Shown here piece after piece: positions 11,450 through 17,285 of a stretch of 64,000 nucleotides of DNA. Each line of letters starts with the position of its first letter. The first letter of the stretch is position 1. Source of the DNA: Trichosphaerium sp. ATCC 40318 (lineage: Eukaryota > Protista > Tubulinea); the NCBI GenBank assembly GCA_038496445.1, contig JALMLS010000336.1, positions 1-64,000 of the forward strand, in the 5' to 3' direction. A model generated the notes under the pieces. The model made no database searches. It was not told the origin of the DNA and saw only the letters and a list, made by a program, of their open reading frames with translations. A program made the position numbers and the translations under genes.

Positions 11450-12496
11450 CTTGCAAAGTTGTTGGTGACACTGAAGAGCCGCACTTATTGCAACACCGGC
11501 TAAACTTAAAACCGGAATTTTAAGTGCCCGGCGAAATTACAACATTTTCTCTACACCCGGATTATTTTTGGGGCAGGAACAAGTTTCAAACAGTAAAGAA
11601 AGGTAATTCGTATTCGGATAAAAAGTTTAAAGCCTTTTATGAAACGTGAGATGTCGGCGAACATTTAGCCGATTTGCGGAGTTCCTCGCTGGTCAGTTCA
11701 TTTACTTTTAGGAACTTGTCGATGATACACACTTGCAAATAATGTTAGGAGTATGCACACCGTTCGGTATAATCGGGTATACTGAGGATAAAGCTACAAC
11801 ACCTTCTACTATACCTACGACAACGTTCGAAGCCAGAGAAGTACCTCAAGTAGCTGCCTGCGAAAACGTGGAAGCGCATGAACAGCCAACGTTTGAGAAA
11901 CCTCTGGAAAGCCAATCAATAACCCTTGGGGGCGTAGCTGAACTACTATTAACCCTGCATGACGCTCCAGATTGTTTTGTAACGCATTTATATTACACAA
12001 AAGCTACACAGAGCGCAAACCGGTCTAAGCGAAGCCATCGTAGTAGCAGGTACGCCCACTGTCTAAAATTGTAATACCCAAAAACAATTTCCTTGATCGG
12101 GCAAATAAATGGGTTATTTCTCCCAGTGACCCCATGTAGGTACCCTGGATATTACAAGGCACCTGTTAACACTTCAAGTGCTTCTAAACCAGGATATTCT
12201 TCACTATTTACTGGAGTACGTTAAAACAACTTCAAAACACTGTTTCCTTGGTTTGACAATAGTTTCCATAGTTTTGTGTAACGTTTTTAGTAATCTCGTT
12301 TTAAACCAGTTTGTTTTTTTGTTTCCTCTTATTTTACGTCTCTACGACGCGTTAAATAATAAAACCCGGATTCGTAAAGTTATGGCGACATTTTCTTACG
12401 CAATAATTCTAGGTTCAACAAGCACGAAAGCGCCAAGCAGATGGTCCACCTACAACCTCTTCAATACCACCTTTCAAATATAGAAAAATCAACAAT

Positions 12497-15400
12497 ATGC
12501 CGGTAACTCGGGCTACCGGGGCCAAAAATTGCCCGCCGGTCATTACACCTAGTTTTCTTCCTTTGTCTGTTGGAGGCCTTGGCCACTTTTTTACGCGAGA
12601 AGCTATAGCAAGGCAAAGAGAAATGTTGGGACAACAAGGAAAAACAAATCATAAGCAAGCTATGCACCAAAGCCCTTTCACAGTACAGGTCTTTGATATA
12701 AAGAAAGGCCCAAAGGCAGTGTACCAGTACGTAGTATTTTAGAGTTTTTTTATGTTCGTGGTATTGATTTATTCCTTTTTTACAAACAAACCCCTTTTCC
12801 TGAAATGTCATTTAGAAACTTCGTGCTAGCACGGTTCTTTTGTTTAATTTGGGTTTATGGTATATTTATAGTTTTGCTATGTAGGATGTATGTTTCTGAT
12901 TCAAAGCATCAAGTTTTAGCGCAGCTTGATCAAGCTCTGAACCACCTTGTTGAAAGTGCTTGTATAAGAAACTACAGTATTGTACGCATAACAGGACTGC
13001 GAAGGGAGCTCAACAATGTATTTATAACTGGATTGGAACCAGTAAAAGGAGCTTTGGCACCTGTAAATAAGCTAGGTAACCCTCAGACAATAGCGTTTGG
13101 GGTGCCGCAAGCCGTGGTATGTGTTTTAGTACACAACTATTTTTTGAACAGAAGTGAATTATCTGAAGTTCAAAAATAACGTTACCGCTTCATTATTACT
13201 TATATCGCCTGCTTACACCATTTCTAGTACAATAGCCCTTCCCAAAAGTTGACACCACCTATTGAAGTTTCTGTTGCTTCTCCTACACCTATAGTAACAC
13301 CATCTCTGTCTATTCCAACGCCATCGCCGCAAGTTACGCTGAATAAAAGTGCGTTTACGACGTGTTCCTACTTTTCGTATTTTTCCGTTTTTATTTCTGT
13401 CCTTACTTATGTTTAATAGCGCGTTACCAATGCCCTCTTCGATATTGTACTACTCAATTTACTACATTTGATCGTCTCATGACCCACACGAAACAATGCA
13501 AAAAATTACAAGGCGCTGTAAAGTAAGTATTGACTGTCTTGAAACGTTCTTGATGCTTTCCGGTTTGTGCCGGCGCGGATAAACAATTTTTCCGATCGTT
13601 GACGATTCTGATTTGTATTTTCAAAAGGGAGGACAGGCAAAACCATCCATGTGGCAGGAGTTGCTCTGGAAATGTTTCTTCATCATCAAAGTTGGCTACT
13701 GCGCTTGGTACTTGTAAAGATAAGACAAAAGCAGCTAGACTTATTCTTGTTAAAATGGGTAAGTATTACTACAGGCGTTAACGCGAAGTAAAAAGGGCTT
13801 TGAGTTTCGAAGATCAAAAACCGAAGTTCGGCCAACTTTTTTGTTTCGAAAGAAAAAAGCTAGTCTACAAAAAACTAACTTGTTGTTTAAAAGGTGAGGA
13901 GACAATACAAGGGCATACATATAGTTTGGTTGGATTATTTTCTTGTCAATGTAGACGGTGGTTATCAGTGCATGATAAAAACTTGGTATGTCGCCATAAC
14001 CTTGTGTTACTTAATCTTCACAACCGTTGACTTATATTTTTTTGTTAAGTATGCACTAAGCCGTGATTTTAATCCAAAAAAATCAACCTTTCTCATTGAG
14101 CAAAAACTCAAGGATGGTAAAATGTTTATTCGTCTACGCACTGGAGAGAAGTACGAAAATGCAGTCGCCTTTGGTGGCCAATGCTTAAAAATAACTTCTG
14201 ATATTGCGGGTAAGAAGAAACCTTTCTCAAGTGAAGCGACTTCTGACACTTTGTTTTTGTAGAAAATCAATTTTTTTGTGTACATAATGTAAACGCTCTT
14301 GAAGAGCTTCTTGAACCGATTTTTGGTATGGATAAACTGAAACAAAGATTAAGACAATTCAGAAAGAAATTCTTTTGGGAATTAGCGCTTAAAGCACAAG
14401 TACGTTACAACGCTGAAAACTTTCTGTTTAGGTTTTCTTATTTTTTTCCGATATCCTTAACTTATTGTTATCTTCAGAGTGCAACCGTTAAGTCTACTGA
14501 TATGATGTCTATGGCATTTATGGGATCTCCAGGGACAGGAAAAACAATGATGGCTCGATTAATCGCGCGGAGTACGTACTTGTGGCTCATTGAAAGAAAC
14601 GATAAAATTTTTGCTTGTTAAATATCATTCCTTCTTTCTGGATCGCTTGCTTTTTCTTATTCTTTTTAGTGATGCATCGTTTGGGTATTGTAACATCAAG
14701 TAACGTATTAGAAGTACAAAGGAGTGATCTTGTCGGTAAATACGTCGGTCACACAGCAGCGAAGACTAAAAACGTGATGCAACTTGCTCAAGGAGGTGTA
14801 TTGTTTCTTGATGAAGCTTACAGACTCTCTGATTCTGGCTCATCAAACGACTTTGGAAAAGAAGCTATTGAAGAACTAATGACTGCTATGAATCCTGGTA
14901 AGTATCGAACATTTTCCGCGAAGAAAGGAAACTTGTTTTCAAGTGACTTGTTTTCTCAATTTTGTTTTGAAATTCTTTACTCTTTGTCGCAAATATAATC
15001 GGTTCCTGACTTACAATATTGTAAAGTCATATTATCGAGCGGCTTTTCCAAAGGCCCTTGAGATGGCTGTTTTTTCTAGAGAGAATTCTAATTTTTTTCT
15101 GTTTTTTGTAGATTTGCCTCCAGAGAAGCGAATCGTTTTCATTTTTGCTGGCTACAAGGATAAAATGAATCAGTTCATGCGTACCAATCCAGGACTATTC
15201 AGAAGAACACCACATATATTTGATTTTCCTGATTATGAGCCTGAAGAGCTTGTTGAGATATTAAAAGAGAAGATATCAAAGAAGGGTTATTTTATTGATC
15301 CTAAACTTACTGATAAAAAGTTTAAAGATATAATCGTTAATGGTACTACACCTGAAGCAAGAAGTAAAGTGAATGCTGGTTTAACAGACGTTCTAATACC

Positions 15401-15638
15401 TGCTGCTACAAGACACCTTGTAGATAGACTTGTAAGTACCCAAAGAACTCCATTTTGTTTAAGTTCTCTTTTTTTTTCCTTTTTTTTTCTTCATCACTGA
15501 CACATGTTTTTTCAGGACTTGGGAGTCGATTTCGGTAGAAAACTACTTGAGTTGAATGAACAAGATTTCAGGCTTGGTATTGCTGAGCTACCTAAGGTAG
15601 ATCAAAGCGAATCAGGATTACCACAAATGTATTCTTGA
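12497..15638 (+). CDS. CbbX/SpoVK-family AAA+ ATPase with N-terminal RPA70N-like OB fold and C2HC zinc finger
   Basis: AAA motifs MAFMGSPGTGKTMMAR, EVQRSDLVGKYVGHTA, GGVLFLDEAY and FAGY..MNQFMRTNPGLFRR. N-terminus PFTVQVFDIK..YQMYVSDS..LNHLVES..IVRI..KLGNP. Finger YQCPLRYC..F..LMTHTKQC. Exons join in frame with GT-AG introns. Confidence 0.8.
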
Positions 15639-16035
15639 AGTGTTTTTTTTGTGAAAACATAAAGATAGCACTTATGGTTCCCTTTAATTTCTAATTAATC
15701 AACAACTGTAATACTGTAATAAACAAAACCAAGTTGTATTTTAACAAAAACTTTGCTCTTGTTGATAGGAAAAAAAACACTCCTTTCGTGATGTACCAGT
15801 GAGCTAAGTAAGATGTATATTTGATGTCGCCCACAAAAGAAATCTGTCACGTTTTAGCAAACAACAGTATGTCTTATGACATAAACTGTGTGCCCTTACG
15901 TTTACTGTATTGCTGGCTTAACAATACGGAGTATGGCATACTTACTCTGTACTGTTTAGAATTGATTGTACGAGCAGATATTTTGCATATCATTTTTTTT
16001 TTGATTCAGTTTGTATTTGCACTATCAGAGGTAGT

Positions 16036-17285
16036 TTATATCTCCAGTTTTATTTTATTAATACTTCTATCAGTTGAGAAGTACATATACCCCTTATTAT
16101 AAACTAAACCCATAGGAAAACGAAGCTCTACATCAAGTTTAACTTTTACAACCTCTCCTGATTCTGGAAAAAGACGAAACATCTCATGTTCGTCAAAGTA
16201 ATATACACTCTCTAGTGGTAATTGTTAGTATCGCAAGAGTTTTAATTAGATATATGGGAAACACTGATTTCATAGTGAGAGTGTCATTTACCTCTTGCAC
16301 AGCAAAGAAACCAGCCACTGCTTGTACGATGTGATGAACACATTTTTGGAATGCTATCACTATCGAGATTCATCTTCCATACAGCCTTTGTTGTACGGAA
16401 AAACAAGTTTCCATTCCTATCTACATCAACGCCTTGTGGTGCTCTAAATGTAGCCTGTATTGTTGATGAAATTACACGGTTGGGATTCTTTGAATCAAGA
16501 ATATTGATTTGGTGCTTGTCAACATCACTAAAAATAACTTGATCATTTTCTCCAATGACAATCCCGCATAGCCATTTATGATTGCAACTAACTGCTGATA
16601 TATCTCCAGTAGATGCATTAATTCTTTGTACACTCTAGTTGATGAAAGAAGAGTTACAAAGAGAAACCTCAAAGTGCCTGCAAAAAAAAAATTGCATACT
16701 TTCTAGTAAAAATCACGTGCCCTATTGTTTGCGTCAGTAATATAAATATTATTCTTACTATCCACTGCAACATCATGAGGGTATGAAAGATAATCAGCTG
16801 TGCATTCAAAGGTTGAAACCTTGTTTGTCTTCAAACATAGCTTGCGAATGCGATGGTTTTGATTATCAGTTATAATAAGCTAGAACACCTAGTTATATCA
16901 CCAGAAACGATTTTAATAAACACTTACATTATCATCAGAATCAAACGCTAAACCGAAAATATCATGAAATTTAGCAACATCTGCTGAGCCTTCGTTTTTT
17001 ATTAAACCAGTGCTGGAATAGCGTTAAATAATTGACTATGTACCATCTGCATAGCCTGCGCGGTTGCTAAAACCTGTTACAGCAATAACTTTGTAAACTG
17101 TTGTGAGCTCCTAAACTTCAGGTTAGAACGTTAAAATTCATGGTAATGTCACGTCCTTTGTACAACAGACAAGATTTTGTGAAGATATTGAACTGAGAGC
17201 AAATCTGAGCCACTGATGAAAGACATGACGGTGTCTTGATGAATTCTAGTATGTGTAAAACCATTTCTACAGGTAATGAATCCAT
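16036..17285 (-). CDS. F-box + NHL-repeat beta-propeller protein
   Basis: MDSLPVEMVLHILEFI (F-box), then AGYADG..AKFHDIFGLAFD, PHDVAVDSKNNIFITDAN, FRAPQGVDVDRNGNLF and LRFPMGL. Confidence 0.8.

Follow-up and report, generated by a model that had tools for sequence, protein, structure and literature searches.

The contig JALMLS010000336.1 of Trichosphaerium sp. ATCC 40318, an intron-rich amoeboid protist, was analyzed over positions 1 to 64,000 (below, the window), and it probably carries on the forward strand, at 12497-15638, a single gene of 12 exons whose predicted protein of about 656 amino acids (aa) joins an RPA70N-type OB fold and a zinc finger to an AAA+ ATPase of the SpoVK/CbbX/EccA clade. 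From its N-terminus the protein is predicted to consist of a short extension, the RPA70N-type OB fold, a Pro/Ser/Thr-rich linker, a finger with C2HC ligands, a region of about 130 aa and the AAA+ module. A first-pass annotation made from the DNA letters had proposed this fusion; the motifs it listed are all present between 12497 and 15638 on the forward strand, and the start ATG at 12497 and the TGA stop at 15636-15638 lie where it had placed them. Its further statement that it knew of no described protein with this architecture agrees with our own survey, since the combination of an RPA70N-type fold, a finger and a CbbX-type AAA+ module was found neither in the literature nor as a database protein. 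The architecture is thus probably a new combination built on a known kind of AAA+ ATPase.

The N-terminal domain is, as judged by sequence comparison, homologous to RPA70N, the N-terminal OB fold (OB-F) of RPA1. All searches and profile scoring of the protein were made exon by exon, and the core of this domain lies in exon 2 (12885-13116), which encodes the motifs MYVSD, LNHLVES and KLGNP. Exon 2 alone matches the Pfam family Rep-A_N (PF04057) with an E value of 0.0042 and 17.5 bits at profile positions 43-77. Its comparison by hhalign with a profile that we built from 22 fungal RPA1 N-termini gives a probability of 95.7% and an E value of 8.9e-9 over columns 59-129, and this fungal profile itself retrieves the human RPA70N structures at E 3e-21. 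In a protein atlas based on language-model features, Rep-A_N clusters are at the top for exon 2 with a score of 0.90, and ten among the matches listed share the Rep-A_N family set. A comparison of exon 2 alone with solved structures gave only chance matches to protein A repeats. An exhaustive phmmer search with exon 2 against 1.84 billion representative proteins found no orthologue; it gave one real match (E 1.6e-4), a protein of Tetrapyrgos nigripes, and two others that are repeat artefacts. The Tetrapyrgos protein is 383 aa long and consists of three tandem Rep-A_N domains (Pfam E 3e-57).

The beginning of the same domain lies in exon 1 (12497-12726, donor GTACGT), which contains the start codon, an N-terminal extension of about 30 aa and the predicted alpha1 and beta1 elements (FTREAIA and TVQVFDIKK). 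Residues 55-72 (SPFTVQVFDIKKGP) align to columns 26-43 of the fungal profile; the alignment is weak when taken alone (E 0.01), and it falls exactly where collinearity with exon 2 predicts. The RPA70N-like domain thus straddles intron 1 in register, which supports the splice modeled there. The resemblance to RPA1 runs from end to end of the domain and takes in alpha1, the strand with QV..IKK, the Y..SD motif, the helix LNHLVE and the KLGNP at its close, so that the proposed homology with the RPA1 N-terminal domain is borne out. Unlike in RPA1, the domain is here not followed by DNA-binding OB folds.

What this domain binds may well differ from what RPA70N binds. In RPA70N, the residues R31, R41, R43 and R91 are required for all the partner peptides that were tested, namely those of HelB, BLM, RMI1, WRN, MRE11, RAD9 and ETAA1 (PMC10479964). 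The Trichosphaerium protein has K in place of R31, V in place of R41, Q in place of R43 and a non-basic residue in place of R91; the RPA70N stretch PRYRLLMSD reads AVYQMYVSD, and two arginines are found a few residues upstream of the R91 column. On these residues the canonical mode of docking, in which acidic helices are bound, is doubtful for the RPA70N-like domain. Given the replacement of the cleft arginines, acidic helices of the kind that RPA accepts are probably not the ligand of the adaptor, and the RPA70N fold has probably been reused for a different ligand. The idea of a docking module for checkpoint proteins that brings a remodeler to replication or repair complexes is therefore weakened: the cleft residues give no support to a role at replication or repair sites. 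Nuclear or DNA-linked work of the protein is possible.

Exon 3 (13228-13348) encodes the Pro/Ser/Thr-rich linker, and its translated frame is the best of the three by codon usage. The C2HC finger that had been noticed after the N-terminal domain is encoded by exon 4 (13420-13522) as a single putative finger of classical type with ligands C-x4-C-x12-H-x3-C. Its full pattern, Y-x-C-x4-C-x3-F-x5-L-x2-H-x3-C, fits the classical C2H2 pattern (F/Y)-x-C-x2-4-C-x3-F-x5-L-x2-H-x3-5-H except that the last ligand is Cys. It matches Pfam zf-C2H2 (PF00096) with an E value of 0.007 and 17.2 bits (cutoff 25.2), and its best matches among solved structures are finger 1 of WT1 and finger 1 of Zif268. Exon 5 (13628-13758) encodes a Cys-containing segment without a fold assignment, in a frame favored by codon usage, and ends in phase 1; exon 7 (14050-14209) encodes the segment just before the AAA+ module. 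No Pfam match was found for exons 5-7, which together encode about 130 aa, and no atlas match for exon 7.

The AAA+ module is encoded by exons 8-12, which are collinear on a SpoVK-like profile at positions 19-40, 58-79, 83-151, 155-223 and 260-274, respectively. Exon 8 (14263-14399) supplies the N-terminal helices (LEELLEPIFGMDKLKQRL) and exon 9 (14478-14571) the Walker A motif GSPGTGKT, with a Pfam AAA match at E 1.5e-4. The pore loop LVGKYVGHTA and the Walker B motif VLFLDEAY are in exon 10 (14670-14897); exon 11 (15112-15431) encodes the sensor-1 GY (FIFAGYKD), the region of the arginine finger (NPGLFRR) and the greater part of the lid subdomain; and exon 12 (15516-15638), whose collinear match is weak, completes the lid and ends with the stop. 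The best solved relative is CbbX, which exon 10 matches (PDB 3zuh) at E 1.2e-19 with about 55% identity over 73 residues without a gap and exon 11 at E 1.4e-9, EccA1 being the next-best solved relative. NCBIfam places SpoVK, CbbX and EccA together for the AAA+ exons, exon 9 among them, and exon 11 matches its SpoVK family at E 4.6e-16.

The motifs point the same way. Walker A, Walker B and the pore-loop Tyr (KYVGH) are intact, and the protein has both the GY at sensor-1 and the Asn upstream of the arginine finger (TNPGLFRR) that are signatures of this clade (PMC11513918). With CbbX (3zuh, 3syl) it shares the pore-loop block LVG-x-Y-x-GHTA-x-KT, Walker B, the GY sensor-1 and the NPG...R region. 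Counted from the Asn of TNPGLFRR, the Arg at +6 is conserved, and the other Arg is at +5 instead of +4; that is, the first arginine of CbbX's NPGFRSR is shifted by one position here. The rough sums of the per-exon scores of exons 9, 10 and 11 are about 152 bits for the CbbX equivalog TIGR02880 (16.3 + 82.5 + 53.0; cutoff 459) and about 165 bits for the SpoVK equivalog TIGR02881 (22.8 + 83.3 + 58.7; cutoff 423), to be read against cutoffs that are set for whole proteins. Since both totals are far under the cutoffs, the protein appears to be a member of the clade that is neither CbbX nor SpoVK. On profile and motif evidence, then, the ATPase belongs to the SpoVK/CbbX/EccA clade and its catalytic core is intact, which upholds the assignment of a CbbX/SpoVK-type AAA+ with intact Walker motifs and arginine finger.

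Whether these two halves belong to one gene depends on the gene model, and in particular on the hinge at 13759-14049. The window is eukaryotic in character, with a G+C content of about 37% and short introns. ATG 12497 is the first ATG after a stop codon, and the final model has 12 exons with 1971 nucleotides (nt), or 656 codons plus the stop, with no internal stop. All 11 introns, of 53-214 nt, are GT-AG, and all phases agree. Compared with the introns, the exons contain more G+C and less T: 31-47% G+C (at least 35% in all except exon 8) and 23-33% T in exons, as against 30-40% G+C and, for most introns, 38-52% T. A crude codon-usage score, which was trained on the gene's confident exons, favors the modeled frame in exons 3, 4, 5, 7 and 8. 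A YTRAY motif, often CTRAC, whose A precedes the 3' splice site by 15-25 nt is found in 7 of the 11 introns, as against a density of 0.01 per nt across the window, and an AATAAA lies about 80 nt 3' of the final stop. Rfam found no non-coding RNA match in 11500-16500.

An earlier version of the model, with 11 exons, had one break in the reading frame, which fell between 13758 and 14050 and was resolved by adding a 92-nt exon at 13894-13985 (exon 6, donor GTATGT), a modeled bridge between exons 5 and 7 that is the weakest part of the model. Its frame is open for 68 codons and continues in phase into exon 7 once a canonical intron of 64 nt is removed. There is no ATG in the exon 6 frame or in the first 24 codons of exon 7, where the first in-frame ATG is codon 25 (14122). 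Exons 6 and 7, being open, in phase and without an ATG before 14122, thus need an upstream coding exon, and the donor of exon 5 has the phase that they require. The YTRAY motif is present in both hinge introns, at 15 nt from the 3' end in one and 19 nt in the other, and it recurs in five further introns of this gene; the branch-like CTAAC ahead of exon 6 is 15 nt from its acceptor. Other ways of crossing the hinge were weighed and rejected, namely splicing of exon 4 to 13853-13985, splicing of exon 5 to 13955-14209, and a long exon 6 that begins at 13813, where there is an in-frame alternative acceptor. The acceptors at 13813 and 13955 have no branch-like motif at the usual distance, and the exon 13955-14209 would translate intron-like sequence.

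The strongest alternative is that there are two neighboring genes, one for a small RPA70N-like and zinc-finger protein and one for a stand-alone CbbX-like AAA+ protein, in which case each would be ordinary. The first gene would read through the exon 5 donor to a stop at 13779-13781, and the second would start at ATG 14122, within exon 7, or at ATG 13972. In favor of this arrangement, the hinge is exactly where the simple model has its one frame problem, exon 6 lacks codon-usage support, and CbbX and SpoVK normally occur as stand-alone proteins of about 300 aa. In addition, the open frame that includes exon 7 reaches back to 13894 and has an ATG at 13972, and reading 13972-14049 unspliced would give a hydrophobic, anchor-like N-terminus of 21 residues in frame with exon 7. 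However, 13986-14049 has an intron-like composition and a negative codon score, only 190-340 nt would be left for the 3' end of one gene plus the promoter of the next, and an AATAAA was sought 3' of the stop at 13781 and none was found. The arrangement also sits poorly with the ATG-less reading frame that runs in phase from exon 6 over a canonical intron into exon 7, and with the resemblance of both hinge introns to the other introns of the gene. We consider two genes unlikely, and a single gene that joins the RPA70N-like/finger half to the AAA+ half a rather likely arrangement, as far as the DNA allows a judgment.

Far less probable is that the gene is unexpressed or decaying, or that the model is a chance chain of open exons. 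The failure to find an orthologue and the loss of the canonical binding arginines from the N-terminal domain would fit such a view, and three features go against it: the 12 exons are open over 1971 nt with canonical splice signals, the core ATPase motifs are all intact, and stops occur in the contig at 5.6% per codon, a frequency at which long open frames are not expected by chance. That the protein is simply a CbbX, with the upstream exons encoding a targeting or otherwise unrelated region, is scarcely credible: CbbX is indeed the best solved match, with the high identity in the Walker B/pore-loop exon given above, but the CbbX equivalog total falls far below its cutoff, the SpoVK model scores slightly higher, and the N-terminus is a predicted folded RPA70N-like domain with a finger, not a signal or transit peptide.

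Several observations weigh against our reading of the locus as one gene for an RPA70N-finger-AAA+ protein. The Pfam score of exon 2 alone is under the PF04057 gathering score (26.7 bits), as expected because the exon holds only part of the domain; exon 1 alone is undetected by Pfam, a BLASTP comparison of exon 1 with the three-copy Tetrapyrgos nigripes protein gave no match, and AlphaFold run on exon 2 alone gave a pLDDT of 54. Exon 6, in addition to its lack of codon-usage support, is short; among 291-nt controls, whether shuffled or real, 4-6% contain a comparable bridging exon, and the acceptor threshold for the bridge was relaxed after the data had been seen. In the AAA+ module, the sensor-2 Arg, unlike in CbbX, seems to be missing and replaced by Gly (VNAG, as against GNGR or ANAR in relatives) in an alignment made by eye; the HMM (hidden Markov model) alignments end before this site. 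Finally, the protein and metagenome searches found no orthologue on which conservation of the fusion could be tested. With these points counted, a single 12-exon gene for this three-part protein is still the explanation that we think likely.

The relatives that were found match one half of the protein or the other. A metagenome scan with exon 2 found nothing, and an architecture survey by way of the Tetrapyrgos nigripes protein yielded nothing but ordinary fungal RPA1 proteins, all of them lacking an AAA domain. The Tetrapyrgos three-domain gene and an RPA1 paralogue bear successive locus tags on one 438-kb contig, which suggests that the docking domain by itself was duplicated locally. The nearest metagenome relatives match only the AAA+ part, with 35-50% identity; they form a large family of SpoVK-like AAA ATPases, encoded by intronless open reading frames (ORFs) that are about 490 aa long and lie on contigs whose G+C content is 23-25%, and their N-terminal 250 aa or so are unrelated to the Trichosphaerium protein and have no Pfam match. 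Their low G+C content raised the possibility of a giant-virus origin, which was rejected: the only named sources are AAA ATPases of metagenome-assembled genomes (MAGs), and all of these MAGs are Bacilli. One metagenome sequence joins the same SpoVK-like AAA type to DUF285 repeats.

Characterized members of the clade are remodelers of narrow range, CbbX acting on Rubisco, SpoVK on MurG and EccA on type VII substrates. By analogy with them, the Trichosphaerium protein would assemble as a hexameric ring and pull on a single dedicated client or a small set of such clients, and its variable N-terminal region would be the client or location adaptor, in this case a repurposed RPA70N fold together with the finger. 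A finger ahead of an AAA+ ATPase has a parallel, in layout only, in WRNIP1/Mgs1, where an N-terminal zinc finger targets the ATPase at stalled forks. That finger is a ubiquitin-binding UBZ4 finger and the WRNIP1 motor is of the clamp-loader clade, whereas the Trichosphaerium protein has a finger of classical C2H2 pattern and a motor of the CbbX clade. CbbX itself, the red-type Rubisco activase, is an AAA+ hexamer of narrow client range and lacks an N-terminal adaptor domain. The SpoVK-EccA-like clade, which belongs to the classical AAA+, has as a whole been described as a group of specialized chaperones of narrow client range, whose recruiting domains at the N-terminus vary greatly (PMC11513918). 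In this the Trichosphaerium protein would resemble SpoVK and EccA, which likewise carry the clade signature and a variable client-recruiting N-terminal domain on a conserved AAA+ motor. The N-terminal domain is a small beta/alpha domain in SpoVK and TPRs plus a beta-helix in EccA, and the described eukaryotic members carry an SF1 helicase; neither an RPA70N-type OB fold nor a zinc finger has been reported for any member of the clade.

Eukaryotic members of the SpoVK/CbbX/EccA clade are barely characterized, and it is the N-terminal domains that choose the client, so an RPA70N-type fold as adaptor would be a new way of targeting a motor of this clade. If the join is confirmed, the N-terminal domain would serve as a handle for finding the motor's client. 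More speculatively, this lineage might have turned the RPA70N fold into a general-purpose adaptor for different effectors, here an AAA+ unfoldase, and the protein might be a dedicated remodeler whose OB fold and finger dock it on a client associated with the nucleus or with single-stranded DNA and that extracts or reactivates this client. We regard this as improbable on present evidence; if true, it would give the clade a eukaryotic, chromatin-linked job that no one has described.

Three minor features of the locus may be mentioned. The intronic YTRAY motif could aid the modeling of other genes in this genome. On the reverse strand, 12461-12811 is an ORF of 116 aa that lies antisense to exon 1 and intron 1; it is without gene features and is probably spurious. 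Upstream, a Thr/Pro/Glu-rich open frame at 11733-12074 on the forward strand ends about 420 nt before ATG 12497 and may be the last exon of an upstream neighbor, in which case the promoter region would be short.

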